Sequence record: MK817115.1
Strand: one strand, 5' to 3'
DNA length: 64,000 bases
In this document: positions 1,756 to 51,009 of the stretch, one piece after another
Layout of the letters: the number at the start of each line of letters is the position of its first letter
How positions within the stretch are numbered: position 1 is the first letter of the stretch
The notes under the pieces: model-generated
What the model was told of the DNA's origin: nothing
Seen by the model: only the letters and a program-made list of their open reading frames with translations
Databases searched by the model: none
Program-made: the position numbers and the translations under genes

Positions 1756-2199
1756 TTACTCCTTAAAGTAGATATCACGAATTTGTTTAATCATCTCTAA
1801 CTCTTGAAGTCCTATCATACCAAAGTCTTCTTGTATTGTCAACTGCTGAAAGTACATTTCTTCTAAATTATTGTACGGAATCTCAACAAGATTCAAAGGC
1901 TCACTTTCCACACGATAAATTGTATCTTGTACATCATGCTTTTCGATATGAATACTAAATGTATCTTTTTGAATTCTAAATTTATAAAATGTTTGATTTG
2001 TTGTAAACAAACCAACTTTAGGATGGAATCCCATTTGAATACACAAACAATCTTCATCCTTATATTTCAAGTATATAGCTTTTGACGTTGCTAGTACTTT
2101 AGATTTTGGGAAATAAAAATCACCCATCAGCTTCTGACGTTTCCAGTCCTCATATACAACTGGATGCTTAACCTTCTTCAATTGGTGCAGTACTGTCAT
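1756..2199 (-). CDS. Hypothetical protein, FQxS-motif paralog family (divergent member)
   Basis: C-terminal LEEMYFQQLTIQEDFG. Confidence 0.7.
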   Translation of the reverse strand: MTVLHQLKKVKHPVVYEDWKRQKLMGDFYFPKSKVLATSKAIYLKYKDEDCLCIQMGFHPKVGLFTTNQTFYKFRIQKDTFSIHIEKHDVQDTIYRVESEPLNLVEIPYNNLEEMYFQQLTIQEDFGMIGLQELEMIKQIRDIYFKE

Positions 2200-2579
2200 A
2201 GTTTTTTCCAGTCCAATGAATCGAAATCGATTTGTTCAGGATTATCAACAGCGACAACTCGTGCATTATGAAGAGTTTCAAAGTAGCCGTTCCACGGTGT
2301 ACGTACTGGAATTTTTTCATCTCCAATTTTTACAAAGAAAGAGAATTCACATGACATTGGATCAAACCATTCTTTATGTTTGGCTTCATCGATTATTGTC
2401 GCACGTTCGTTACTATATGCATCATCGAGTTTCTTAAAGAATACCCAATGCTCTTTCAAAGACTGTAATGCTACAACTGCCTCATCCTTTGATTCCCATT
2501 GAACATCCAATGTATTGGTAACTGAATCTTCAGTTTCAGTGTCCCCTGTAGTGTAATGTACTTCAATGCTGTATTTCAT
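2196..2579 (-). CDS. Hypothetical phage protein
   Basis: 127-aa ORF with coupled start/stop overlaps. Confidence 0.7.
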   Translation of the reverse strand: MKYSIEVHYTTGDTETEDSVTNTLDVQWESKDEAVVALQSLKEHWVFFKKLDDAYSNERATIIDEAKHKEWFDPMSCEFSFFVKIGDEKIPVRTPWNGYFETLHNARVVAVDNPEQIDFDSLDWKKL

Positions 2580-3034
2580 TAATCATCGCCTTTTAATAAT
2601 TTACAAATTTCAATCATATGATAATAACATGTATTCCAAAATTGTCCATTAGTACTTCCAACATCATGCACAGTACTTTGTTGGAAAACATATTCATCGT
2701 TGAACATCATTTTAATATCATCAATGTAAAATTCTGGTTTTGAATCATTATTGTATTCAATACTCGTTTCACCATCTGGATCAAGTGAAATTGATGATAT
2801 GTCGTGAATTCCTCTCGGATTTGTTGGATAAATTCTCAACGTAAGAGGATAGAAGTCTGGATCGGTTTCATAAGTATATTCGATTATGTAATAACCATCA
2901 CCAGTAATTGATTGATATTTAAATGTAGTTTCAATTGAATTTGAGATGTTAAATCCCAGTTTCTTTATCTCATGTAGATGTGATAATATTTTATGTAAAG
3001 ATCCTAAAACATGAATCAAATTATCAATTTTCAT
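2579..3034 (-). CDS. Hypothetical protein, FQxS-motif paralog family
   Basis: NDEYVFQQSTVHDVG. Confidence 0.75.
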   Translation of the reverse strand: MKIDNLIHVLGSLHKILSHLHEIKKLGFNISNSIETTFKYQSITGDGYYIIEYTYETDPDFYPLTLRIYPTNPRGIHDISSISLDPDGETSIEYNNDSKPEFYIDDIKMMFNDEYVFQQSTVHDVGSTNGQFWNTCYYHMIEICKLLKGDD

Positions 3035-3573
3035 TTACGATCCTTTGAAAAGTTCAGTTTAAAAGTTTTACCAAATTCCATTGTAGCTTTATCCAGATTG
3101 TTAATATTTTCTTTCAACATTTCTTGCATCTTCCTAATACTTTCAATCCAGGCTTCTTCTTCGATACGAAGAATTGGTCGCAATCGTTCCTGAATATCGT
3201 TAAAACGTGTATTGAGTTCAACCAATGATTCATATGTGAAATCTTTCATATCGATAATAGTACTTCTTTGAAAGAATTCTTCTTCAGACAAATTACTTAA
3301 AATGATTTTATCACGACCAATAGATAATGTCAATTCATCATCTTTATTTTTTTTAATTACAATACTAACAGGTGTTTTTAATGTAATGCAAATATCATGA
3401 TTATTAAATGTTTCAGTTTGGTTTGACATTCTGAATTGAAGTTTCCCAGATAAAGCATGTACTGGTGATGGTTTCTTTTTACCAGTAATAACATCTTCCC
3501 ATGAATCGAGAATATTATTAATAATTTTAACATAAGGAATTGGCATATATGCACCTATGAAAAATCCACGCAA
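3031..3573 (-). CDS. Hypothetical protein, FQxS-motif paralog family (start may be the internal MPIPY)
   Basis: SEEEFFQRSTIIDM followed by a coiled-coil-like tail. Confidence 0.75.
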   Translation of the reverse strand: MRGFFIGAYMPIPYVKIINNILDSWEDVITGKKKPSPVHALSGKLQFRMSNQTETFNNHDICITLKTPVSIVIKKNKDDELTLSIGRDKIILSNLSEEEFFQRSTIIDMKDFTYESLVELNTRFNDIQERLRPILRIEEEAWIESIRKMQEMLKENINNLDKATMEFGKTFKLNFSKDRK

Positions 3574-3588
3574 TGCGTGGATTTGTAA

Positions 3589-4119
3589 TTATTCAAGTAT
3601 AGTAATTTCAATTAAACGAATTTCGATAAACTCGTTTTCAGTTTCCCATGACGTGCCAAATTTCTTTTCAAGTTCAGATTTCACATCACTTTTAAATTTT
3701 CCCATAGTATTAGGAATAATTTGTTTGGTTAATTTGTCGTAACCACAATAAAACATAGGTTTCTCCCTTCGAGATATTAGCTGAACAAAATCTTTTGGAT
3801 ATGCAGGTATGTTATGCATCACTTCATGAATACACTCAGTACTTGAATCTTGTACTTTGTACATTACATTAAGTTTACCTCTGAAATTTGCGGTCATATC
3901 AACAATAGTTCCTTTACCCGATTTAAGTAAAGTTCCATTCTTTGAATGAGAGCAATAAAATACCTCATCACCAATATTAGGATAATACAAATTAAATTCT
4001 AATTCAGATTTTACAGCCAGCCGTTTGAAACTTTCTGTACGTTTTATATAAGTTTGGTATTTGTTTATGTTCAAAAGAATATCTCTCTTAGTAAATGTGA
4101 TATAACTGGCATAGTCCAT
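3589..4119 (-). CDS. Hypothetical protein
   Basis: 176-aa ORF. Confidence 0.65.
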   Translation of the reverse strand: MDYASYITFTKRDILLNINKYQTYIKRTESFKRLAVKSELEFNLYYPNIGDEVFYCSHSKNGTLLKSGKGTIVDMTANFRGKLNVMYKVQDSSTECIHEVMHNIPAYPKDFVQLISRREKPMFYCGYDKLTKQIIPNTMGKFKSDVKSELEKKFGTSWETENEFIEIRLIEITILE

Positions 4120-4931
4120 CCATTCCCAAGCATTTTGTATGCTTGTGTCTTACTAGACACTTTAAAGAAATCTTCAGGAACACCCTGTAATTTACAACAT
4201 TCTACTACACTTAAGTGTCTATAGTCAATATTTCTTTTGCCATTCTCTAATAGATATTGACGACTGATCACTGGGTCACGAAACACCAATTGTCGTCTGG
4301 ATTTATTAAAGTACTGGTTACAATCACCACCTTTAAAATAGTTAGCATCTATACAGTACGAAGCGGTTCTGTCAGTGTACCAACCATCTTCAATAATATC
4401 TTGAAGTTTAGGTGCATTGGATAATGCAGGTGGTATAAAAAGCTTATCAGTACTGTACCAGTAATATCTCTGCCTGAAGTGAGGCGTATAATGCTGGGAG
4501 TTTATCAGTACTGGCGTGATTCCTAAAATACTATTAATGTATTCTTTGAAATCTTCCTTCATTTTAACATTTTCAAACAGAAATTTCAAGTTAGGATTGA
4601 GACTTTTGATATGATCAAAAATTTCAACCATTACTAAAAATAACTGCCCACGTATATCATTTAAACCACCCTGTTTACCTGCAACTGACCAGGCTTGGCA
4701 TGGGAAACCACCCATTAATAAATCTATTTTGTCCCACTCAATATCCCATTCTCTCCACTTAGTTACATCACCCAATTGGATAATATCAGGAAAGTTAGAT
4801 TGAGATTCAGCTATTGCGTACTTATCAATTTCGGATGAATAATATTTTTCAACTGGGATACCCGCATCTTGCAATGCCATATATCCCACACTCATTCCAT
4901 TAAAAAGAGAAAGTACTCGGATAGGTTTCAT
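4071..4931 (-). CDS. DNA (cytosine-5) methyltransferase
   Basis: Motifs I (SLFNG), IV (GFPCQ), VI (ENV), VIII (RQRYY) and X (LGNGW) in canonical order. Confidence 0.93.
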   Translation of the reverse strand: MKPIRVLSLFNGMSVGYMALQDAGIPVEKYYSSEIDKYAIAESQSNFPDIIQLGDVTKWREWDIEWDKIDLLMGGFPCQAWSVAGKQGGLNDIRGQLFLVMVEIFDHIKSLNPNLKFLFENVKMKEDFKEYINSILGITPVLINSQHYTPHFRQRYYWYSTDKLFIPPALSNAPKLQDIIEDGWYTDRTASYCIDANYFKGGDCNQYFNKSRRQLVFRDPVISRQYLLENGKRNIDYRHLSVVECCKLQGVPEDFFKVSSKTQAYKMLGNGWTMPVISHLLREIFF

Positions 4932-4968
4932 ATAAAATCCTTTTTATATTGTTAAGGTACTATAATAT

Positions 4969-4996
4969 ATTATAGCATCTTATTTAGAAATCTTCC
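4969..4996 (-). promoter_or_regulatory. Candidate middle-type promoter GGAAGA-N16-TATAAT with extended TG
   Basis: TGCTATAAT with a GRRA-type box at 16-nt spacing, upstream of the methyltransferase. Confidence 0.45.
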
Positions 4997-5274
4997 AAAC
5001 TTTTTTCATCACACCATCGTGATGTACAGATGATTGCAGATGCCAGAATTGAAGCACTTGCACGTCCTCCACCGAGTAAATACTGGCTAATTACGCCAAT
5101 CATATTGAACACTTTATCATACTCGGTTAGTTGTTCAAAACCTTTCTTCCAATGCTGATATTCTTCTTCTGTGACATTAAACTCACCATCAAGTTCCTTT
5201 AAAATCTTTTTAAGCACAGCACTATGTTCACTCATCATCATCTCCATATCGTTCGTCATAAAAATCATCATCAC
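4984..5274 (-). CDS. Hypothetical protein (true start probably an internal Met)
   Basis: ORF track; GGAG precedes the internal MMMSEH. Confidence 0.6.
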   Translation of the reverse strand: MMMIFMTNDMEMMMSEHSAVLKKILKELDGEFNVTEEEYQHWKKGFEQLTEYDKVFNMIGVISQYLLGGGRASASILASAIICTSRWCDEKSLEDF

Positions 5275-5313
5275 GATCTAATGGTTCTTTTGGCTTTTCA
5301 GACATATATTTCC

Positions 5314-5574
5314 TCACATGGTAAAGGTATTATCACCATCCATATCTTCATCAGTTGCTTCAGCTAATGTCTTGATTGTAAGTAATCCACGCTTCACGTA
5401 CAACATGAAGACCTTTTCATAATTACCAAACATAATCTCAGGTGACATGTAATTCTCTGTTACAATGACGATTGGACGGCCCTGTGAAAGCATACGAAAC
5501 ATAGTACGATATTTGTCAAATGTGCGAAATTCATCCATGTTCATCATGTGGCGTTTACGAACTACTTTAGTCAT
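5314..5574 (-). CDS. Hypothetical protein
   Basis: 86-aa ORF, AAGGT SD. Confidence 0.65.
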   Translation of the reverse strand: MTKVVRKRHMMNMDEFRTFDKYRTMFRMLSQGRPIVIVTENYMSPEIMFGNYEKVFMLYVKRGLLTIKTLAEATDEDMDGDNTFTM

Positions 5575-5588
5575 CTTATTACCTTTAG

Positions 5589-6029
5589 TTAATTGAACTC
5601 TACTTCTGGATAATGATTATAGAACATCTCACGAACTGCGTCAAGATGTTCTTGAAATTGTTTTATATCTTCTAATGATGGTGCATCAATAACAGTACTA
5701 AGTTGAAACAACGATTCTTCTGTGTTATATAGTGACATATCAAATGAATTATTGTTGTCATCAGTTATGATATTATCACAAATTTCGTAAGTGTCAATAC
5801 AAACATCATCAAGTGTTGTATTATCATATACAGTGTATACGAATACAAAAATAAAAGAAGAATGTTCTTTACCATAACGCGGTGGGTCATATGTCACATA
5901 GCATTTGTGATCAAATGTATCGAGTTCCATAGACACCACCCCAGCTTCACGATATTCATTAGTTTCACTGGTAAGATCCGGTATTGATGTTATCGAAAGT
6001 AAGTGGAGAAATTTACTTGGATTTAGCAT
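5589..6029 (-). CDS. Hypothetical protein, FQxS-motif paralog family
   Basis: TEESLFQLSTVIDA. Confidence 0.75.
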   Translation of the reverse strand: MLNPSKFLHLLSITSIPDLTSETNEYREAGVVSMELDTFDHKCYVTYDPPRYGKEHSSFIFVFVYTVYDNTTLDDVCIDTYEICDNIITDDNNNSFDMSLYNTEESLFQLSTVIDAPSLEDIKQFQEHLDAVREMFYNHYPEVEFN

Positions 6030-6484
6030 TTCACCACCATTGGATTTTGCGACTGTATATTAAAAAGGGATAATACAAAAGTACTCAATTTTTCGAAACA
6101 ATCTACTAATACATTTAACTCATCATAACTAACACCAATTTCACGAATAAGCGATTGTTGAAAGAATCCTTCTTCGGTTAACGTTAAACTACTAACCTCA
6201 GTTATGTTATAATAACTTTGGGATGTTGTGGTTGATATTAGTTGTATTGAAATCGTATCTGATGTTGTGTTGTACAGATATAAATATTTTGTTTTTCTTT
6301 CCAATGGATCTATACATGAAAGATCGATCATGTCATAGGTTTTTCCAATAAAAATATTACAATCATCTGACAATTCACAACAAATGCGTATATGTTCTTT
6401 CGGGTCATGAACACGTTGTGTGTCAAATTCACATGACATTGCAATTTCAAAATGATTTTTTATTTCGTCAACATTCATCTGCAC
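6023..6484 (-). CDS. Hypothetical protein, FQxS-motif paralog family
   Basis: TEEGFFQQSLIREIG. Confidence 0.75.
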   Translation of the reverse strand: MQMNVDEIKNHFEIAMSCEFDTQRVHDPKEHIRICCELSDDCNIFIGKTYDMIDLSCIDPLERKTKYLYLYNTTSDTISIQLISTTTSQSYYNITEVSSLTLTEEGFFQQSLIREIGVSYDELNVLVDCFEKLSTFVLSLFNIQSQNPMVVKC

Positions 6485-6852
6485 CCACCATTAATTCTTA
6501 TATTTGTATAGTTTAATGCTTTTTTAATAATACCAATTTCTGTAATTCCTATTACATTTTTCTCAATCAATGACAATTGGAATAGTTCCTCTTCGGAAAT
6601 ATCAATACTGTGGATTCTTGTACAATAATCGTTGAAGTCATATACATATCGTATTGTATAGTCGTTTATAGAAACTGATACAATTGCAATCCCATCATGG
6701 ATGTAAGTTAGTTCATTTGAGTATCTATTAAAAATTAACCTATCTGGTGAACCTATTGGTAGTTGAAATGTATTTCTAGTATCTTGAACAATAACAAAAT
6801 CATCATCTATATTTCTACTCAGAACACCCAAAATATCATATATAGTAGTCAT
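6475..6852 (-). CDS. Hypothetical protein, FQxS-motif paralog family
   Basis: SEEELFQLSLIEKN. Confidence 0.75.
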   Translation of the reverse strand: MTTIYDILGVLSRNIDDDFVIVQDTRNTFQLPIGSPDRLIFNRYSNELTYIHDGIAIVSVSINDYTIRYVYDFNDYCTRIHSIDISEEELFQLSLIEKNVIGITEIGIIKKALNYTNIRINGGCR

Positions 6853-6853
6853 G

Positions 6854-7258
6854 TTATTCTTTACCTTCAGCAGTTCTGATAATTTTCATAACTTCTCTGG
6901 ATAGTGCGTATATTTTTTTATAGTACTCAAATGTAACTGAACCAAAATCATTAATAGTACTAGCCATGAAGAACGATTCTTCTGTATATAGTTCATTTGA
7001 CAAAGCAACCAGTTCTTGGTGAAATTTTGCGTCCTTCCAATAACGAAATTCAAAAACAAATTGTCCGTCATGACCGACTCTACAACATTCAGAACGATCA
7101 CTGTCTACACAGCTAAACACAATATCCCTTTCAGAGTCGTACCAGATATTTCCAATATTTGTTTCAATAACAGCATAATCAATTTTTTTAGAATTTGGAA
7201 TTAAACCTTTTTTCACCAGCACTAAACTGGTATTATCAATATCTAGTAAACTTACCAT
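6854..7258 (-). CDS. Hypothetical protein, FQxS-motif paralog family
   Basis: TEESFFMASTINDFG. Confidence 0.75.
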   Translation of the reverse strand: MVSLLDIDNTSLVLVKKGLIPNSKKIDYAVIETNIGNIWYDSERDIVFSCVDSDRSECCRVGHDGQFVFEFRYWKDAKFHQELVALSNELYTEESFFMASTINDFGSVTFEYYKKIYALSREVMKIIRTAEGKE

Positions 7259-7259
7259 A

Positions 7260-7670
7260 TCAATTCCCCATTACTAAAGTGTTTTTAATCTCCAACAATT
7301 CACTATACATATTCTTCAATTGTAATATATCTTCAAAAGTAATACCACCAAGATCATCAACTAATGAACGTTGGAATAAAGATTCACTTGTTTGTAATGT
7401 ATCTAAATCGGTGATTTTTAATAAAGAACTTGGATTAAGTGTTTCGACTAGTAGTATGTTTTTGTATGGTACATATGTGATCTTGATGTTCTTTTTATAA
7501 TTAATCTTATAAAATCGCATAATTGACGATTCATCACTTAGTTGGATAATTGGGTCGTCTTGATCATTAGACCACCATACAGTACTAGTCATATGATTGA
7601 CGTGGTGGTTCAATTCTGATATGTCCAAATCTAAAAAATATTTTAGTTCATTGTGTAAATCTAAACTCAT
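7260..7670 (-). CDS. Hypothetical protein, FQxS-motif paralog family
   Basis: TSESLFQRSLVDDLG. Confidence 0.75.
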   Translation of the reverse strand: MSLDLHNELKYFLDLDISELNHHVNHMTSTVWWSNDQDDPIIQLSDESSIMRFYKINYKKNIKITYVPYKNILLVETLNPSSLLKITDLDTLQTSESLFQRSLVDDLGGITFEDILQLKNMYSELLEIKNTLVMGN

Positions 7671-7700
7671 AAATTTATCCTCAATGCAGCATCATCATGT

Positions 7701-7729
7701 ATTGTAGGATAAACCCACAATAATGTCAA
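7701..7729 (-). promoter_or_regulatory. Sigma70 early promoter TTGACA-N17-TACAAT
   Basis: Near-consensus boxes with 17-nt spacing upstream of the 7670 start. Confidence 0.8.
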
Positions 7730-8121
7730 GATGTGAAATAATTATACCAGTAATATAGTTCTTTTAATTCTTCAGTACTGAACAATACTTCTTCTATTGT
7801 AGATTGTTGAAAGTGATATTCATCATTTAGATACATAGAAATATTACTATATACTTTCCTATTGTATTGACATAAAAAAGAAGTTTTTTGATTAATGTAT
7901 TCAGTAAATGTTAATTTATCTAACTCAATATCGAATGATAATTTAATAATATGACTATTATCATTTACATACATTAGTTTCTTTGAAAAATGATCAATTG
8001 TAATATATTCTTTATGAGAGAACTGAAATATATTATTAAATTTATTACCATTTGTGCTTCTAAATTTTTCAAGGTAATAAGAAAGTGGTTTAATTATTGA
8101 AGTTCCAATATTGTTCTTCAT
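7726..8121 (-). CDS. Hypothetical protein, FQxS-motif paralog family
   Basis: NDEYHFQQSTIEEV; GAGGA SD. Confidence 0.75.
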   Translation of the reverse strand: MKNNIGTSIIKPLSYYLEKFRSTNGNKFNNIFQFSHKEYITIDHFSKKLMYVNDNSHIIKLSFDIELDKLTFTEYINQKTSFLCQYNRKVYSNISMYLNDEYHFQQSTIEEVLFSTEELKELYYWYNYFTS

Positions 8122-8142
8122 ATATCCTCAATTTTAGATAAG

Positions 8143-8166
8143 AAAAATGCCCCGAAGATCGGGGCA
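8143..8166 (-). terminator. Intrinsic terminator
   Basis: TGCCCCG/CGGGGCA stem followed by T5 on the minus strand. Confidence 0.85.
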
Positions 8167-8281
8167 GTACTAAAATGATTTTGTACCAAAAGGGGAATAA
8201 GAACAAAATGAAAATATAATAACGCATCATTATTATGTAAGGGAGGAAAGTAACATGATATGTTAACCATTTCTGGTATAT

Positions 8282-8833
8282 TTATTTATCATTTAATTCT
8301 TTAAGTTGGGTTTGTATATCTTTAGTTATATTTCGAATTTTCTTAAAGCAATAAACACTATCGTCCAATTCGATTTTAAGTTCATGTGTAAATGCATACA
8401 GAAGTTCAGCAAATACTAAATCTTGACGCATCCAGTTTCCATCTTTATATAAAGTCATTACACAATATGGGCATTCACTATTAGAAGTTTGCTTTCCAAT
8501 AAAAACACTTTGAATTGATTCATGCTTAAAGCCAATAAAACTTTCATTTATTTTTTTAATTTCAGTACTGATATCGAATTTAGCACTGGTGTTGATTGCA
8601 AAAATTTTATTCCCACTTTCATCAGTATTGATATTGAGTTCAATATCACTACCTAGTTTACGTACTGCTAGAGTATAAAGAAGTAATTCATACATGTCGT
8701 AACTTGTTACATTACCATTTGGTGCAATTACATCAACACTAACACCGTGCATTTTTACTTCTGTATTAAATCCATCTTTATCAGAAAGAAAATCAGTGAT
8801 TTGCTTTGTAAGGATTTTAATTTGGTCTATCAT
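8282..8833 (-). CDS. Hypothetical protein
   Basis: 183-aa ORF, AAGGA SD. Confidence 0.7.
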   Translation of the reverse strand: MIDQIKILTKQITDFLSDKDGFNTEVKMHGVSVDVIAPNGNVTSYDMYELLLYTLAVRKLGSDIELNINTDESGNKIFAINTSAKFDISTEIKKINESFIGFKHESIQSVFIGKQTSNSECPYCVMTLYKDGNWMRQDLVFAELLYAFTHELKIELDDSVYCFKKIRNITKDIQTQLKELNDK

Positions 8834-8853
8834 ATTTCATTTCCTTATGTGAT

Positions 8854-8878
8854 AAAAGCCTCCATAATGGAGGCTTTT
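8854..8878. terminator. Intrinsic terminator, potentially bidirectional
   Basis: AAAAGCCTCCAT-A-ATGGAGGCTTTT. Confidence 0.85.
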
Positions 8879-8886
8879 GTATTTAC

Positions 8887-9315
8887 TTAGAGAGATTCTT
8901 CGTATTCAGCAACAATCTCAACCATTTCATTAATGAACTTGATGTGAGAATGTGTCACTGTACGGAAGTCGTAAACAAGTGACTGTTGGAAAAATACATC
9001 TTCATCAAGAGAACCATCAAAGTTCAAATCAATGTTTTCATCGTCATTGCTTGGTGCAACTTTAATATTCAGAAGATTTTCATCAACTGCAAGTTTTACA
9101 ACACAACCCAGTGCAATGGCAAGAACATATGCTGGTTTCTTAGCTTTTTCATTACGGAATGGTGCACGTAGAGCACAAAAAGTACTGCTAATCTCATCAT
9201 TTGGTTCTTTGTATTTAACATTGACCATTAGTTCTTCGATTTTGACGCTCTCAATAACACGACCAGTTTCTGGAGCGAAGAAAGAATGTTCACGGATAGT
9301 TTGTTCGATATTCAT
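8887..9315 (-). CDS. Hypothetical protein, FQxS-motif paralog family
   Basis: DEDVFFQQSLVYDF. Confidence 0.75.
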   Translation of the reverse strand: MNIEQTIREHSFFAPETGRVIESVKIEELMVNVKYKEPNDEISSTFCALRAPFRNEKAKKPAYVLAIALGCVVKLAVDENLLNIKVAPSNDDENIDLNFDGSLDEDVFFQQSLVYDFRTVTHSHIKFINEMVEIVAEYEESL

Positions 9316-9318
9316 ATA

Positions 9319-9513
9319 TTATTCCTTATTTAGATTGCTAAAAATACGAAGATTGCGGTTTGCTTTAAACTGTTTCAAATCACCAAATCTATCATCAACG
9401 ATGAAAGTTGCTGATTTCTTTGACTGACATATTGTACAAATCAACATACCTTGTATTGTATACTCAGTTGAGCAATTTGTACAGTACTTTTTTTCATAAA
9501 GTTCAGTACTCAT
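9319..9513 (-). CDS. Small zinc-ribbon-like protein
   Basis: CTNC...CTIC. Confidence 0.6.
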   Translation of the reverse strand: MSTELYEKKYCTNCSTEYTIQGMLICTICQSKKSATFIVDDRFGDLKQFKANRNLRIFSNLNKE

Positions 9514-9845
9514 AAAACCTTCACATCAGTACGTTTTTCTCTTTGTTCTTTTTTAACCTCATCAGTTCTAGTATCTTCTAATTGTAACACAACTTCTTTT
9601 AGAATGTCAACATCAATTGTTGCTTCTACATATTGATAGTCGTTTACACCAAAAACATACTTTACTGCAACCCATACACGGTTATACCATTTTAAAAAAG
9701 GATTTAAACGCATACTTATCAGACATTGACCAAGTTTATCATCTCCATATTCCTCTGTCAAGTCAAATTGTGCAATGTGAACGCAATGCTCCATTTTATC
9801 GCCACAAGAACAACGTAAAATATACTCTTTACTATCTTCACTCAT
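9510..9845 (-). CDS. Hypothetical protein with N-terminal CxC...HCxH
   Basis: ORF coupled by ATGA overlaps. Confidence 0.65.
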   Translation of the reverse strand: MSEDSKEYILRCSCGDKMEHCVHIAQFDLTEEYGDDKLGQCLISMRLNPFLKWYNRVWVAVKYVFGVNDYQYVEATIDVDILKEVVLQLEDTRTDEVKKEQREKRTDVKVL

Positions 9846-21578: not shown

Positions 21579-21851
21579 TTATAGAATCCAATCGGCTGAA
21601 TTATATAATAAAGCCGTGAAAAGTTCTTCTGTCATTTCCAATTGATTTAATAAAAAATTAAAAGAATTTGCCTTATTTTTAATCCCAGTACTTTCAGCTT
21701 GGGCTGATGCAACTAATAAAACTTTAAACATATCATGTGAAACTTCATATACATATTTGGTATTTTTTCTATCTTCAAACATGAATCTTCCGTTTTTAGA
21801 TACTAATGTTACATCCTTGAAACTAAATTTTCCATCATCAGTTATCATCAA
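21579..21851 (-). CDS. Hypothetical protein
   Basis: 90-aa ORF. Confidence 0.6.
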   Translation of the reverse strand: MMITDDGKFSFKDVTLVSKNGRFMFEDRKNTKYVYEVSHDMFKVLLVASAQAESTGIKNKANSFNFLLNQLEMTEELFTALLYNSADWIL

Positions 21852-40259: not shown

Positions 40260-41384
40260 TTATAGTTTGAATGGTGAGAATGTATCTACTTGGATATCAT
40301 TCACAATACCACCAATGATGTAAGAACTTATTTCAGTTTCTTGTGGTGCAACTTGTACTGAACCACCACTAACCCAATGCTCAGTCCAAGGTAGAGGGTT
40401 ACTCTTAGATACGGTATATGGACATTTAATTCCTAGTGCAGTCATACGCTTAGAACCAATCCAACGAACATATTGTTTTAGAATTTCTGCATTCAGTCCA
40501 ATGATTGAACCATCTTTAAAGAGGAAGTCTGCCCAAGCTTCTTCTTGACGGATAGCAGACATAAACATTTCCAGTACTTCATCATAACACTCTTCTGCTA
40601 TTTTTACCATATCTGGATCTTCTTTTTTGAGAAGACGTAGAATCATTTGGGTTGCTGCTAGGTGTAGGTTTTCATCACGACAGATTAGACGGATAATCTT
40701 AGCATTACCTTCCATTAGATTGTTTTCAGCAAACGCCCAAGAACACGCAAAGCTTGCATAAAAACGAACACCTTCAAGAATGTTAATACTATTCAGGCAC
40801 AACCAAAGTTTTTTCTTTAGTTCGTATAAACTAATTTCGACTGTTTCACCATTGATTGTATGTGTACCAACACCTAATGCACGGTATAGAGTACCTAGTA
40901 CATCAAGATCATCATAGTATTTGGAAACATCAGCAGCACAATCAGTGATTTCTGGAATGTCCAACATAGTATCAAATACTTCAGAAGGATTAGGATAAAT
41001 GTTACGAATAATATGAGTGTATGATTTACTATGAATCGCACCTTCAAAGAATGCCCATGTCTCTATAAAGTTCTCTAGTTCAGGTAGAGATGCATATGGA
41101 AGTAACATTAGGTTTGGACCACGACCTTGTACGGAATCAAGAAGAATTTGACGTTTCAAGTTAGAGGTAAAAATGTGCTTCTCGGAATCATTAAGGTTGG
41201 CAAAATCAATTTTATCTTTAGATACGTCAACTTCACCAGGAGTCCAGAAGAAACTTTTCTGTTGCTCTGTTAGTTTTTCAAGTGTAGAGTATTTGTTACT
41301 TTCAAAGCGTTGGATATCAACACTTTCATCAAAAAACATATTTTTTTCTAGGTGAGACTTCTCGTTAATTTTGAAAACTGACAT
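40260..41384 (-). CDS. nrdB: Ribonucleotide reductase class Ia beta subunit
   Basis: FFWTPGEV, LDSVQGR, EAIHSKSY, EGVRFY, DENLH. Confidence 0.97.
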   Translation of the reverse strand: MSVFKINEKSHLEKNMFFDESVDIQRFESNKYSTLEKLTEQQKSFFWTPGEVDVSKDKIDFANLNDSEKHIFTSNLKRQILLDSVQGRGPNLMLLPYASLPELENFIETWAFFEGAIHSKSYTHIIRNIYPNPSEVFDTMLDIPEITDCAADVSKYYDDLDVLGTLYRALGVGTHTINGETVEISLYELKKKLWLCLNSINILEGVRFYASFACSWAFAENNLMEGNAKIIRLICRDENLHLAATQMILRLLKKEDPDMVKIAEECYDEVLEMFMSAIRQEEAWADFLFKDGSIIGLNAEILKQYVRWIGSKRMTALGIKCPYTVSKSNPLPWTEHWVSGGSVQVAPQETEISSYIIGGIVNDIQVDTFSPFKL

Positions 41385-49466: not shown

Positions 49467-50987
49467 TCATTTCCTTTGATTTAACCATTGCTTCATTGCA
49501 TGAACACGATCAGTACCAGCATGTGTCTGTGGATTCTGTATTTCGTTTTGTGTCGTAGAGTTAGGAGCACTATCAGTATTTAGTGTTACTGTATTGTCAG
49601 GTTGCACAGATGGTGATTTAGCTGCACCAGAAAGCGAATGACGTAATGTTTGCATAGTGCTGGGTGGTAACGCCATGTTCCCTCCACCAATCTTAGAAAC
49701 ACCGCTGTGACGGAATCCATTACCTTCGGTTTCCATTTGTTGTACTGTAGTTGCGTGGTCAAGAACTCTCAATGAATCAATATCATAAGACATACGCAAA
49801 CGGGAACCTACTGCACTACTGTTACGTGTTTTTTGGAAATCAAACCATAGTTCGCCAGTTTCTTTTCGTGCCTCAATATAAATTACGTTATCAGCAGTAT
49901 AAATTTTTGAAATACCGCCAGCAATCTGACTTTGACTTTTCTTATCTTCGTCCATACCACTACGGTTAAACTGAGATGCAGTGAAAACAGTTAAATCCAT
50001 TTTGGTTGCAAGTGCACGTAATTCTTCTGATACAAACTTATCTTTAGTAAATGTATTGGATTTATCATTTGGTCCAAGACGATTAGAAGTTAATAGATCC
50101 AAATAGTCCACACATACATAATCAAGTTTGATTTCCATCTTAATTTGTAATTCACGTAGATAACTTTCAATATCGTCAGTGGTTGTTACAGATTCAGGTA
50201 AGCGTTTAATACGCAACATACCACTGTTTTTACCTTCAACTTTAACAGCAAATCCAATCTTTTCAGCTTCATTTTTTACGTTACTGAGTTTTGATTCAGT
50301 CATCATACCATAGATACGAACAGCAACCAACTCTTCAGCTAGTTCAAGTGAAATGTATGCACCATTCATACCAGCTTTCGCAAAGTTAACTGCTAAATTT
50401 TGCAGTACTACTGATTTACCACCACCTGATGCAGCAGCAAAGATCTCTAACTCTCTACGCCCAAATCCACCGAACAGTTTGTAATCAAGAGTTTCCCAAC
50501 CACTCTTAAATGACCCTTGCATTGTACTGAGTGAGCGGATTGTATCTTCAGGGTTTTCAAAAATGTCCAAACCTAACTCATTCTGTACCGTTACCAACAT
50601 TGCTTCTCGGATTAGTTCTTCGATTCCACCATATTTTTTCTGATGGACAAGTTCCATTCCTTTTTCAACGGCTAACGCTAATGCTTTATGACGACAAAAT
50701 TCACCACAGGTATCAAGTACTGATTGTTTATGTAATTCTTGAACTTCATATTGATCGTATTGATAACCACCTTTAACTTCAATATCTTTCAAAGTAGGTG
50801 ATGAACTATATTTTGCAGCATAATCATGCACGTATTGAATACTTTCATGAAATGTTTTATCAAAATATTCTGGTTTAAGGATATTTTTACAACGTACATA
50901 TAAATCAGGATTACTGAAAATCTGAGATAATAAGTATTGTTGTGCATTAATCCCATATTGTTTCACATCCACTGTGCTTTGAATCAT
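49467..50987 (-). CDS. Replicative DnaB-like helicase (gp41)
   Basis: AAASGGGKS, YISLELAE, VDYLDL, TASQFNR, KTRNS. Confidence 0.92.
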   Translation of the reverse strand: MIQSTVDVKQYGINAQQYLLSQIFSNPDLYVRCKNILKPEYFDKTFHESIQYVHDYAAKYSSSPTLKDIEVKGGYQYDQYEVQELHKQSVLDTCGEFCRHKALALAVEKGMELVHQKKYGGIEELIREAMLVTVQNELGLDIFENPEDTIRSLSTMQGSFKSGWETLDYKLFGGFGRRELEIFAAASGGGKSVVLQNLAVNFAKAGMNGAYISLELAEELVAVRIYGMMTESKLSNVKNEAEKIGFAVKVEGKNSGMLRIKRLPESVTTTDDIESYLRELQIKMEIKLDYVCVDYLDLLTSNRLGPNDKSNTFTKDKFVSEELRALATKMDLTVFTASQFNRSGMDEDKKSQSQIAGGISKIYTADNVIYIEARKETGELWFDFQKTRNSSAVGSRLRMSYDIDSLRVLDHATTVQQMETEGNGFRHSGVSKIGGGNMALPPSTMQTLRHSLSGAAKSPSVQPDNTVTLNTDSAPNSTTQNEIQNPQTHAGTDRVHAMKQWLNQRK

Positions 50988-51009
50988 CTATGTTCCCTCA
51001 TTATATGTA

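Follow-up and report, generated by a model that had tools for sequence, protein, structure and literature searches.

Families of viral proteins which are related only through a short conserved segment are known from several systems. The poxvirus ankyrin/PRANC adaptors possess a C-terminal motif that is a separate domain docking to a known host machine, and the internal proteins of bacteriophage T4 share an N-terminal capsid-targeting sequence, which is removed by cleavage and directs the proteins into the virion. Expansions of protein families are also found in jumbo phages: Bacillus phage G possesses about 35 zinc-ribbon copies (PMC7824862), and nearly 10% of the gene products of phage RaK2 are paralogues (PMC3622015). 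Furthermore, one sentence in Hua et al. (2017; PMC5646251) mentions an array in phage 121Q, which is read as tandem duplication. Here we analyze ten minus-strand open reading frames (ORFs) located at positions 1756-9315 of a 64,000-nucleotide stretch (the window; coordinates refer to it unless the record is named) of the genome of Escherichia phage vB_EcoM_phAPEC6 (MK817115.1). Their products (125-180 amino acids, aa) share a motif of the type EExxFQxS[TL] close to the C-terminus and belong to a family which is represented in this phage by 63 ORFs.

By analogy with the poxvirus-type adaptor families, the phage family comprises dozens of paralogs per genome with a conserved C-terminal helical element of ~40 residues and a hypervariable remainder; however, the helices of the phage family are part of a single modelled domain. 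Like the T4 internal proteins, its members are polymorphic small phage proteins with just a short conserved segment in common, but the module is in this case C-terminal and helical, and the members are absent from the virion proteome. The expansions in Bacillus phage G and RaK2 are similar insofar as a family of small proteins was amplified to dozens in a jumbo phage. Nevertheless, they concern another fold and family, and the family studied here is described neither in PMC7824862 nor in PMC3622015. It is not described in the papers on phAPEC6, RaK2, CBB, Sharanji and fEgEco12 or in a comparative review of jumbo phages either, and the only trace that we found in the literature is the one-sentence remark in PMC5646251, where no motif, family definition, fold or function is given. 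Therefore, the existence of an array was already known, whereas the motif, the fold, the link between two arrays, the total number of copies and the restriction to one clade are new.

We interpret these genes as a very large lineage-specific family that was tandem-duplicated and combines a conserved structural core with diverging surfaces, with a probable role in host interaction (probability about 0.6). The family is an uncharacterised case of lineage-specific tandem expansion in jumbo phages.

The conserved C-terminal module

All ten ORFs recognized in the initial annotation, which had been made from the sequence alone, are present in the ORF list of the window on the minus strand, with the length and the motif given there. 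A strict regular expression for the motif matches these ten only among the 219 window ORFs of at least 50 aa, and a looser one (F[QM].[SL][TL][IV]) finds the same ten plus one chance match at 40895-41047. The distance from the start of the module to the C-terminus is 33-51 residues (85 in the product of 3031-3573), which roughly agrees with the 25-45 residues, and a deeper position in the latter protein, noted before. Leave-one-out hidden Markov models (HMMs) of the C-terminal ~40 residues ranked each of the ten window members and eight others from the genome first of 84 sequences, with expectation values (E) of 1e-3 to 1e-13, whereas the corresponding models of the N-terminal parts alone did not recognize the left-out protein (ranks 3-47 among 84 sequences). 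As the C-terminal models succeed and the N-terminal ones fail, the initial annotation is correct at this level: the motif is statistically real, and the N-terminal regions are indeed very divergent, with 51 blastp clusters among 115 sequences.

With one representative taken from each of these 51 N-terminal sequence clusters, position 1 of the motif is T (73%) or S (16%), positions 2 and 3 are E (92% and 94%), position 5 is F/Y/L (80%), position 6 is F (98%), position 7 is Q (94%) and position 9 is S (90%). These are followed by T (57%) or L (37%) at position 10, V (55%) or I (37%) at position 11, D (80%) at position 13, T (47%) at position 18 and E (49%) at position 20. An amphipathic pattern can be seen downstream of position 20, and the conservation runs ~25 residues past the motif.

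At the nucleotide level, the conserved Ser is encoded by AGT in four of the window copies and by TCN in five, the conserved Phe by TTT in five and by TTC in five, and the 39-nt motif core is just 54% identical among the ten copies. Since the codons are mixed and the core has diverged to this extent, the conservation acts on the protein, and a DNA repeat or recent gene conversion can be excluded. Furthermore, the module is the slowest-evolving part of the proteins in ortholog groups (for example, 98% identity as compared to 79%, and 77% as compared to 58%). Judged from these sequence comparisons, the module is under purifying selection at the protein level rather than homogenized by gene conversion.

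The arrays might also be regarded as neutral or selfish filler produced by runaway tandem duplication, in which the individual copies are functionless. The variation of copy number between relatives would be in line with that. However, the ORFs are intact, selection maintains the motif against a background of randomised synonymous sites, the remainder of the proteins is less conserved than the module within ortholog groups, and orthologs are kept in phages of Escherichia, Salmonella, Klebsiella, Yersinia, Erwinia and Pectobacterium, which makes this explanation very improbable.

Size and organisation of the family in phAPEC6

The profile of the ten window members detected seven or eight further members just upstream of the window, and a broader profile three more farther upstream, eleven in all being counted beyond the left edge of the window. 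The whole phAPEC6 genome was then scanned in pieces by an iterated HMM search of ORFs with a cut-off of E≤1e-3. The starting profile found 49 ORFs, and iteration to convergence resulted in 63, 52 of them with an explicit motif. Thus, the ten-member array noted initially is correct for the window but is a part of a much larger set, which occupies 8.2% of the genome DNA and comprises about 11% of the 551 genes.

Most members are organised in two arrays. Array A (record 50.2-71.3 kb) consists of 18 members, including the ten of the window, and array B (record 290.6-318.0 kb) of 38 members with 103-207 aa; the latter putatively, and most likely, corresponds to the array mentioned in PMC5646251. 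Outside the arrays there are single members at 35.6, 237.5, 277.0 and 346.6 kb of the record and a trio at 220-222 kb. Members of the array-A type have an N-terminal part of uniform size (median 96 residues, interquartile range 89-102). In array B these parts range from 61 to 144 residues, some being much shorter than elsewhere, and some sub-groups are mutually very similar. Array A is the more divergent of the two. The median length is 147 aa in phAPEC6 and 140 aa family-wide. The phAPEC6 members are mostly acidic and presumably soluble, with a median isoelectric point (pI) of 4.78 as compared to 5.44 for other ORFs of matched size, and 61 of the 63 lack a strongly hydrophobic segment, which is present in two members only.

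Two intact members have no coding sequence (CDS) in the deposited phAPEC6 record. One is the window ORF 1756-2199, for which the locus tag gp118 was skipped in MK817115 and whose ortholog in the PBECO4 RefSeq genome is gp411; the other (record 50593-51009) lies between gp083c and gp084c, in a gap of 410 nt where nothing is annotated.

Two further ORFs were considered as members and rejected. The partial ORF at 1-465 (gp113c), which the initial annotation had suggested to be a degenerate member, has no match to the family HMM. A 90-aa minus-strand ORF at 21579-21851 has a T-E-E-L-F stretch near the C-terminus and matches the family weakly (E 0.018); it may be a remnant or a chance match.

No family member is found in the table of 62 virion proteins obtained by mass spectrometry of purified phAPEC6 virions (PMC7247149), and the idea that the family consists of virion-packaged or ejected proteins was rejected on these grounds. 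A PBECO4 protein annotated as "virion structural protein" is the ortholog of the window ORF 9510-9845, which is not a member.

Predicted fold and comparison with known proteins

The initial annotation had not recognized the motif as a named family, and the searches bear this out. There is no Pfam family common to 76 family members, no match among the defence-system proteins of PADLOC-DB for 18 members at E≤0.1, and nothing but a chance match to 3ihk (E 0.33) in a sequence-profile search of PDB; the PHROGs to which the window proteins correspond are of unknown function. One of the 76 sequences (alignment A3), which is outside the eight longest, matches Pfam RecQ-1-like_HTH (E 3.7e-12). It may represent a fusion or the product of metagenomic mis-assembly.

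Structure prediction was performed for the product of 7260-7670. The AlphaFold2 (AF2) model built on a shallow alignment had a predicted local distance difference test score (pLDDT) of 41.8 and was discarded, whereas with 76 family sequences a pLDDT of 89.9 and a predicted template modelling score (pTM) of 0.82 were reached. The latter model consists of a helix (residues 5-13), seven strands within residues 21-87 and two further helices (95-102 and 112-134). The strands form a seven-stranded antiparallel meander with loops of 2-6 residues between them. The motif corresponds to helix 95-102 and the turn after it (pLDDT of this block 92-93), and the helix noted initially downstream of the motif corresponds to the long helix 112-134. 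In the model, both helices belong, together with the sheet, to one compact alpha/beta domain.

A Foldseek search with this model revealed relatives in BFVD, with independently predicted structures, that are 14-26% identical and align over 130-149 columns with template modelling (TM) scores of 0.59-0.88. These are uncharacterised proteins of RaK2, GAP32, CBB and the Yersinia phages fHe-Yen9-03/04. A superposition over 130-149 columns is not explicable by two helices alone. Profile-profile alignments of full-length subfamilies mostly cover the last 30-50 columns; nevertheless, the 7260-7670 and 6854-7258 subfamilies align in hhalign over 88 columns with 96% probability, the 2579 and 6854 groups over 67 columns, and the record 50593 and P0059 groups over 66 columns. 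The array-A type is therefore predicted to be one domain whose conserved part is a C-terminal hairpin, as seen in the model of one member and in its distant relatives and presumably valid for the other nine window proteins.

These results bear directly on the proposal that the motif is a separable docking tag on unrelated domains. According to this idea, the family would be a library of adaptors in which an autonomous C-terminal module of ~40 residues docks all paralogs to a single partner from the phage or the host, and the N-terminal domains, unrelated to one another, recognize different targets. Sequence similarity is indeed almost wholly within the module, most profile-profile matches span the 30-50 C-terminal columns only, and array B retains the module behind N-terminal parts of very different size. 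Moreover, the genome encodes a ClpP subunit and a Clp-type ATPase which adaptors could feed, although this is co-occurrence only. On the other hand, the module is found inside one compact domain in the sole high-confidence model, distant relatives superpose over the full length, and some pairs align over 66-88 columns. The module was never seen fused to a recognisable foreign domain (eight longer members were scanned, and no Pfam domain was found in them), and it was never seen alone except in truncated fragments. Such a library appears unlikely to us, although it deserves to be kept in mind for array B, whose N-terminal range still permits a modular reading. Thus, the real and unnamed family with a conserved C-terminal module, as proposed in the initial annotation, stands, whereas the separable tag is not supported: for the array-A type, one modelled member and its distant relatives point to a single, fully homologous fold.

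The compact pattern of acidic, aromatic, Gln and small residues, which keeps a fixed distance to the C-terminus, also resembles a short linear motif, e.g. a site with Gln at P1 that is cleaved or recognized by a protease (similar to 3C-like or potyviral NIa-type sites) or a degron, and the phage does encode proteases. However, the motif is modelled as a helix with pLDDT above 90 rather than as a disordered segment, the conservation extends ~25 residues further as an amphipathic helix, and the proteins are not virion components due for maturation cleavage. We consider a linear motif of this kind hardly credible.

Another comparison is suggested by the model itself. Foldseek found nothing in PDB at E≤0.001, and the sole whole-length alignments of the 7260-7670 model in this database are to homologs of p32/gC1qBP/MAM33 (PF02330), namely 1yqf, 3rpx, 1p32 and 7te3. 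The structure of human p32 was reportedly described by Jiang et al. in 1999 (cited in PMC5630164). p32 is acidic and trimeric. It begins with a single helix, continues with seven antiparallel strands and ends with a pair of helices, the same order of secondary structure elements as in our model. As the phage family is acidic too, its members could be p32/MAM33-like acidic ring oligomers that serve as multi-ligand hubs or as nucleic-acid mimics soaking up basic host proteins. However, the alignments have TM scores of 0.23-0.32 and E of 0.1-1.3, i.e., they are at chance level (below TM 0.5). Membership in p32/MAM33 was rejected, with no match to the MAM33 Pfam family among 76 members at E≤1 and no sequence match to p32 in PDB. 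The resemblance is a lead rather than membership, and the corresponding function is improbable.

Distribution and turnover in related phages

In line with the check proposed in the initial annotation, the search was extended from the genome, where the HMM led to the 63 members, to protein and phage databases, where it led to the RaK2-like clade. A profile search among 1.84 billion representative proteins retrieved 65 clusters at E≤1e-3, nearly all of 115-170 aa, and the motif is present in all of them except P0051 (423 aa, five matches). The latter, which is M23-peptidase-like and contains unrelated repeats, is a false positive. A second protein search with 76 family sequences gave 24 matches and little gain. 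Searching with the 30-residue module (tblastn, E≤10), 57 of 50,697 phage records were matched. They belong to phages of Escherichia (32), Klebsiella (10), Salmonella (5), Yersinia (4), Erwinia (3), Pectobacterium (2) and Xanthomonas (1), and among the matches listed, nearly all are RaK2-like jumbo phages of 326-386 kb. The record of phage Sharanji names MG1655 as the host. As far as can be read from sequence similarity, the family is confined to RaK2-like jumbo phages of Enterobacterales, plus one Xanthomonas phage.

In Pectobacterium phage CBB, four members are present in the 40 kb inspected (record 291-331 kb), amid dense tRNA genes and next to a phage sigma-factor gene. A metagenomic contig (L005) carries a block that is syntenic with the window and shares with it the 183-aa ORF, the C5 DNA methyltransferase gene and a homolog of 2196-2579, as well as a recognisable ortholog of 8887-9315 at the matching end of the block. 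This block contains 15 members, as compared to 10 in the window, which implies gene birth and death in the arrays. The contig also carries two genes not present in the window block. One encodes an ADP-ribosylglycohydrolase (786-1727 of the contig) and is located ~1.6 kb upstream of the member with which the block begins; the other, for a PTH2 peptidyl-tRNA hydrolase (7592-8020), is located between members.

Possible function

If the arrays are a lineage-specific expansion with a conserved core and diverging surfaces, they would have grown through tandem duplication accompanied by gene birth and death, while the rest of the protein would have diverged past sequence recognition. The conserved helical hairpin would be mainly the folding core of the scaffold and possibly also a shared surface for self-association or for a partner. 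During infection, the variable sheet and loops would enable each paralog to bind a target of its own in the host or in a competitor, for host takeover or counter-defence. The fast-diverging surfaces probably serve host interaction, as suggested by the operons of small genes in which the family is found and by the C5 DNA methyltransferase, T7 gp0.7-like kinase and sigma factor genes nearby.

Several points weigh against this interpretation. The literature searched yielded no expression, interaction or phenotype data on any member. The fold model covers one member only, the product of 7260-7670, and with N-terminal parts of 61-144 residues in array B a common fold for all 63 proteins is beyond its reach. 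Comparison of the N-terminal parts alone with hhalign revealed no significant homology (probability ≤2.8%), with a slight shift over decoys (p=0.006). Part of the motif conservation fits structural roles, but this follows from the spacing of the residues and not from the model coordinates. Indeed, the near-invariant Phe and the aliphatics that follow it (T/L, then V/I) are about one helical turn apart, and the T/S-E-E at the beginning of the motif, like the T/S-x-E farther on, resembles a helix-capping box. However, conservation of the acidic and polar residues (E 92%, E 94%, Q 94%, S 90% and D 80%) goes beyond what helix capping alone needs. These residues may mark a shared functional site, and their strong conservation leaves room for a shared interface, as the docking idea requires.

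A further reading is conceivable, in which the ~60 paralogs are a repertoire of single-domain binders on a new scaffold, the variable sheet face of each recognizes another protein of the host or of a rival phage, and the near-invariant acidic/Gln/Ser face of the hairpin docks all of them to one shared machine, e.g. a phage Clp-type protease or the transcription apparatus. We regard this as quite improbable; if true, it would parallel, in a bacterial virus, the expanded adaptor families known from poxviruses and giant viruses. phAPEC6 encodes a Clp-type ATPase (gp246c, L007 860-3148), a ClpP subunit (gp353c, L008 38045-38740) and a T7 gp0.7-like protein kinase (gp031c, L002 25685-26326). These are candidates for shared machines or host-takeover functions, but any tie to the family is pure speculation.

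Irrespective of the function, about 11% of the genes in this 352-kb phage, and about 8% of its DNA, belong to one uncharacterised clade-bound family, which has no Pfam model, no significant structural match in PDB and an unusually sharp motif. Insight into this family would account for a considerable part of the "dark matter" of RaK2-like phages, and several phages of this group are considered for therapy. With a single profile, dozens of "hypothetical proteins" could be annotated in each genome and unannotated members recovered. The family is also a test case for the growth of jumbo genomes by tandem duplication followed by diversification, and should its members turn out to be diversified binders, their scaffold would be interesting in its own right.

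The ten genes and their surroundings

phAPEC6 has a genome of 352.6 kb and is an Asteriusvirus from the RaK2/121Q/PBECO4 group. Positions 62001-74000 of the record match the first 12 kb of the window with 100% identity. When this 12-kb segment is used as a query, it is covered to at least 80% in 33 records, mostly with at least 95% identity; 121Q is 97.8% identical to the window region. The G+C content of the window is about 33% with a negative GC skew throughout, and gene layout and base composition are consistent with a long minus-strand block of small genes. The neighbourhood of the array consists of co-directional overlapping operons of small genes. The ten genes are closely packed, with start/stop overlaps across 3031/2579/2196/1756 and from 7260 to 5589.

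Each of the ten proteins corresponds to a separate PHROG. The first gene (1756-2199, module 1777-1866) encodes a protein of 147 aa that matches phrog_23719 and the family HMM with E 2.4e-25. It is followed by gp120c (2579-3034, 151 aa, module 2612-2701; phrog_21500, E 1.4e-17) and gp121c (3031-3573, 180 aa, module 3199-3288; phrog_38573 over residues 10-180, E 2.6e-16). The ORF of the latter has a TTG start, while the annotated gp121c begins at 3546, and its product possesses an extra tail of ~50 residues after the module. The fourth gene is gp127c (5589-6029, 146 aa, module 5634-5723; phrog_30548, E 1.5e-27), with a product of pI 4.1, and the fifth is gp128c (6023-6484, 153 aa, module 6089-6178; phrog_30841, E 2.1e-20), which has a GTG start and is annotated as 6023-6478. 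Then come gp129c (6475-6852, 125 aa, module 6508-6597; phrog_36084, E 1e-10), gp130c (6854-7258, 134 aa, module 6896-6985; phrog_24510) and gp131c (7260-7670, 136 aa, module 7302-7391; phrog_24941), the product of which was modelled with AF2. The last two are gp132c (7726-8121, 131 aa, module 7738-7827; phrog_33313, E 7.4e-15) and gp134c (8887-9315, 142 aa, module 8917-9006; phrog_23322, E 2.5e-15). The PBECO4 ortholog of gp131c (gp423, L004 7260-7592) is annotated 26 codons shorter than the phAPEC6 gene.

The array had been suggested to be under early promoters. This is plausible, but sigma-70-like sites are not enriched (69 vs 68.9 expected from shuffled sequence). One candidate on the minus strand (7701-7729), based on the consensus match alone, matches the hexamers in 11 of 12 positions with a 17-nt spacer and is situated in the 55-nt gap upstream of gp131c, i.e., in front of the overlapping or abutting ORFs from gp131c to gp127c. 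A terminator-like GC-rich hairpin followed by a T run (8148-8166, minus strand) is located between the 183-aa ORF (8282-8833) and gp132c, and comparable hairpins are present in the gap after gp134c (8852-8880) and in the gap before gp121c (3562-3584).

Genes for a sigma factor and a T7 gp0.7-like kinase are located upstream of the array in phAPEC6, and a C5 DNA methyltransferase gene (4071-4931) lies inside the window array. This gene is overlapped by 49 nt by a 176-aa ORF (3589-4119), which is annotated as a complete CDS in PBECO4 (gp415) and as a CDS of 55 aa alone in phAPEC6 (gp122c, 3589-3756). Finally, phAPEC6 possesses a separate tandem array encoding RCC1-repeat proteins of ~40 kDa (gp001-gp010 and gp549-gp551; L002 1218-14189, L010 23458-27036), several of which are present in the virion (Table 1 in PMC7247149).

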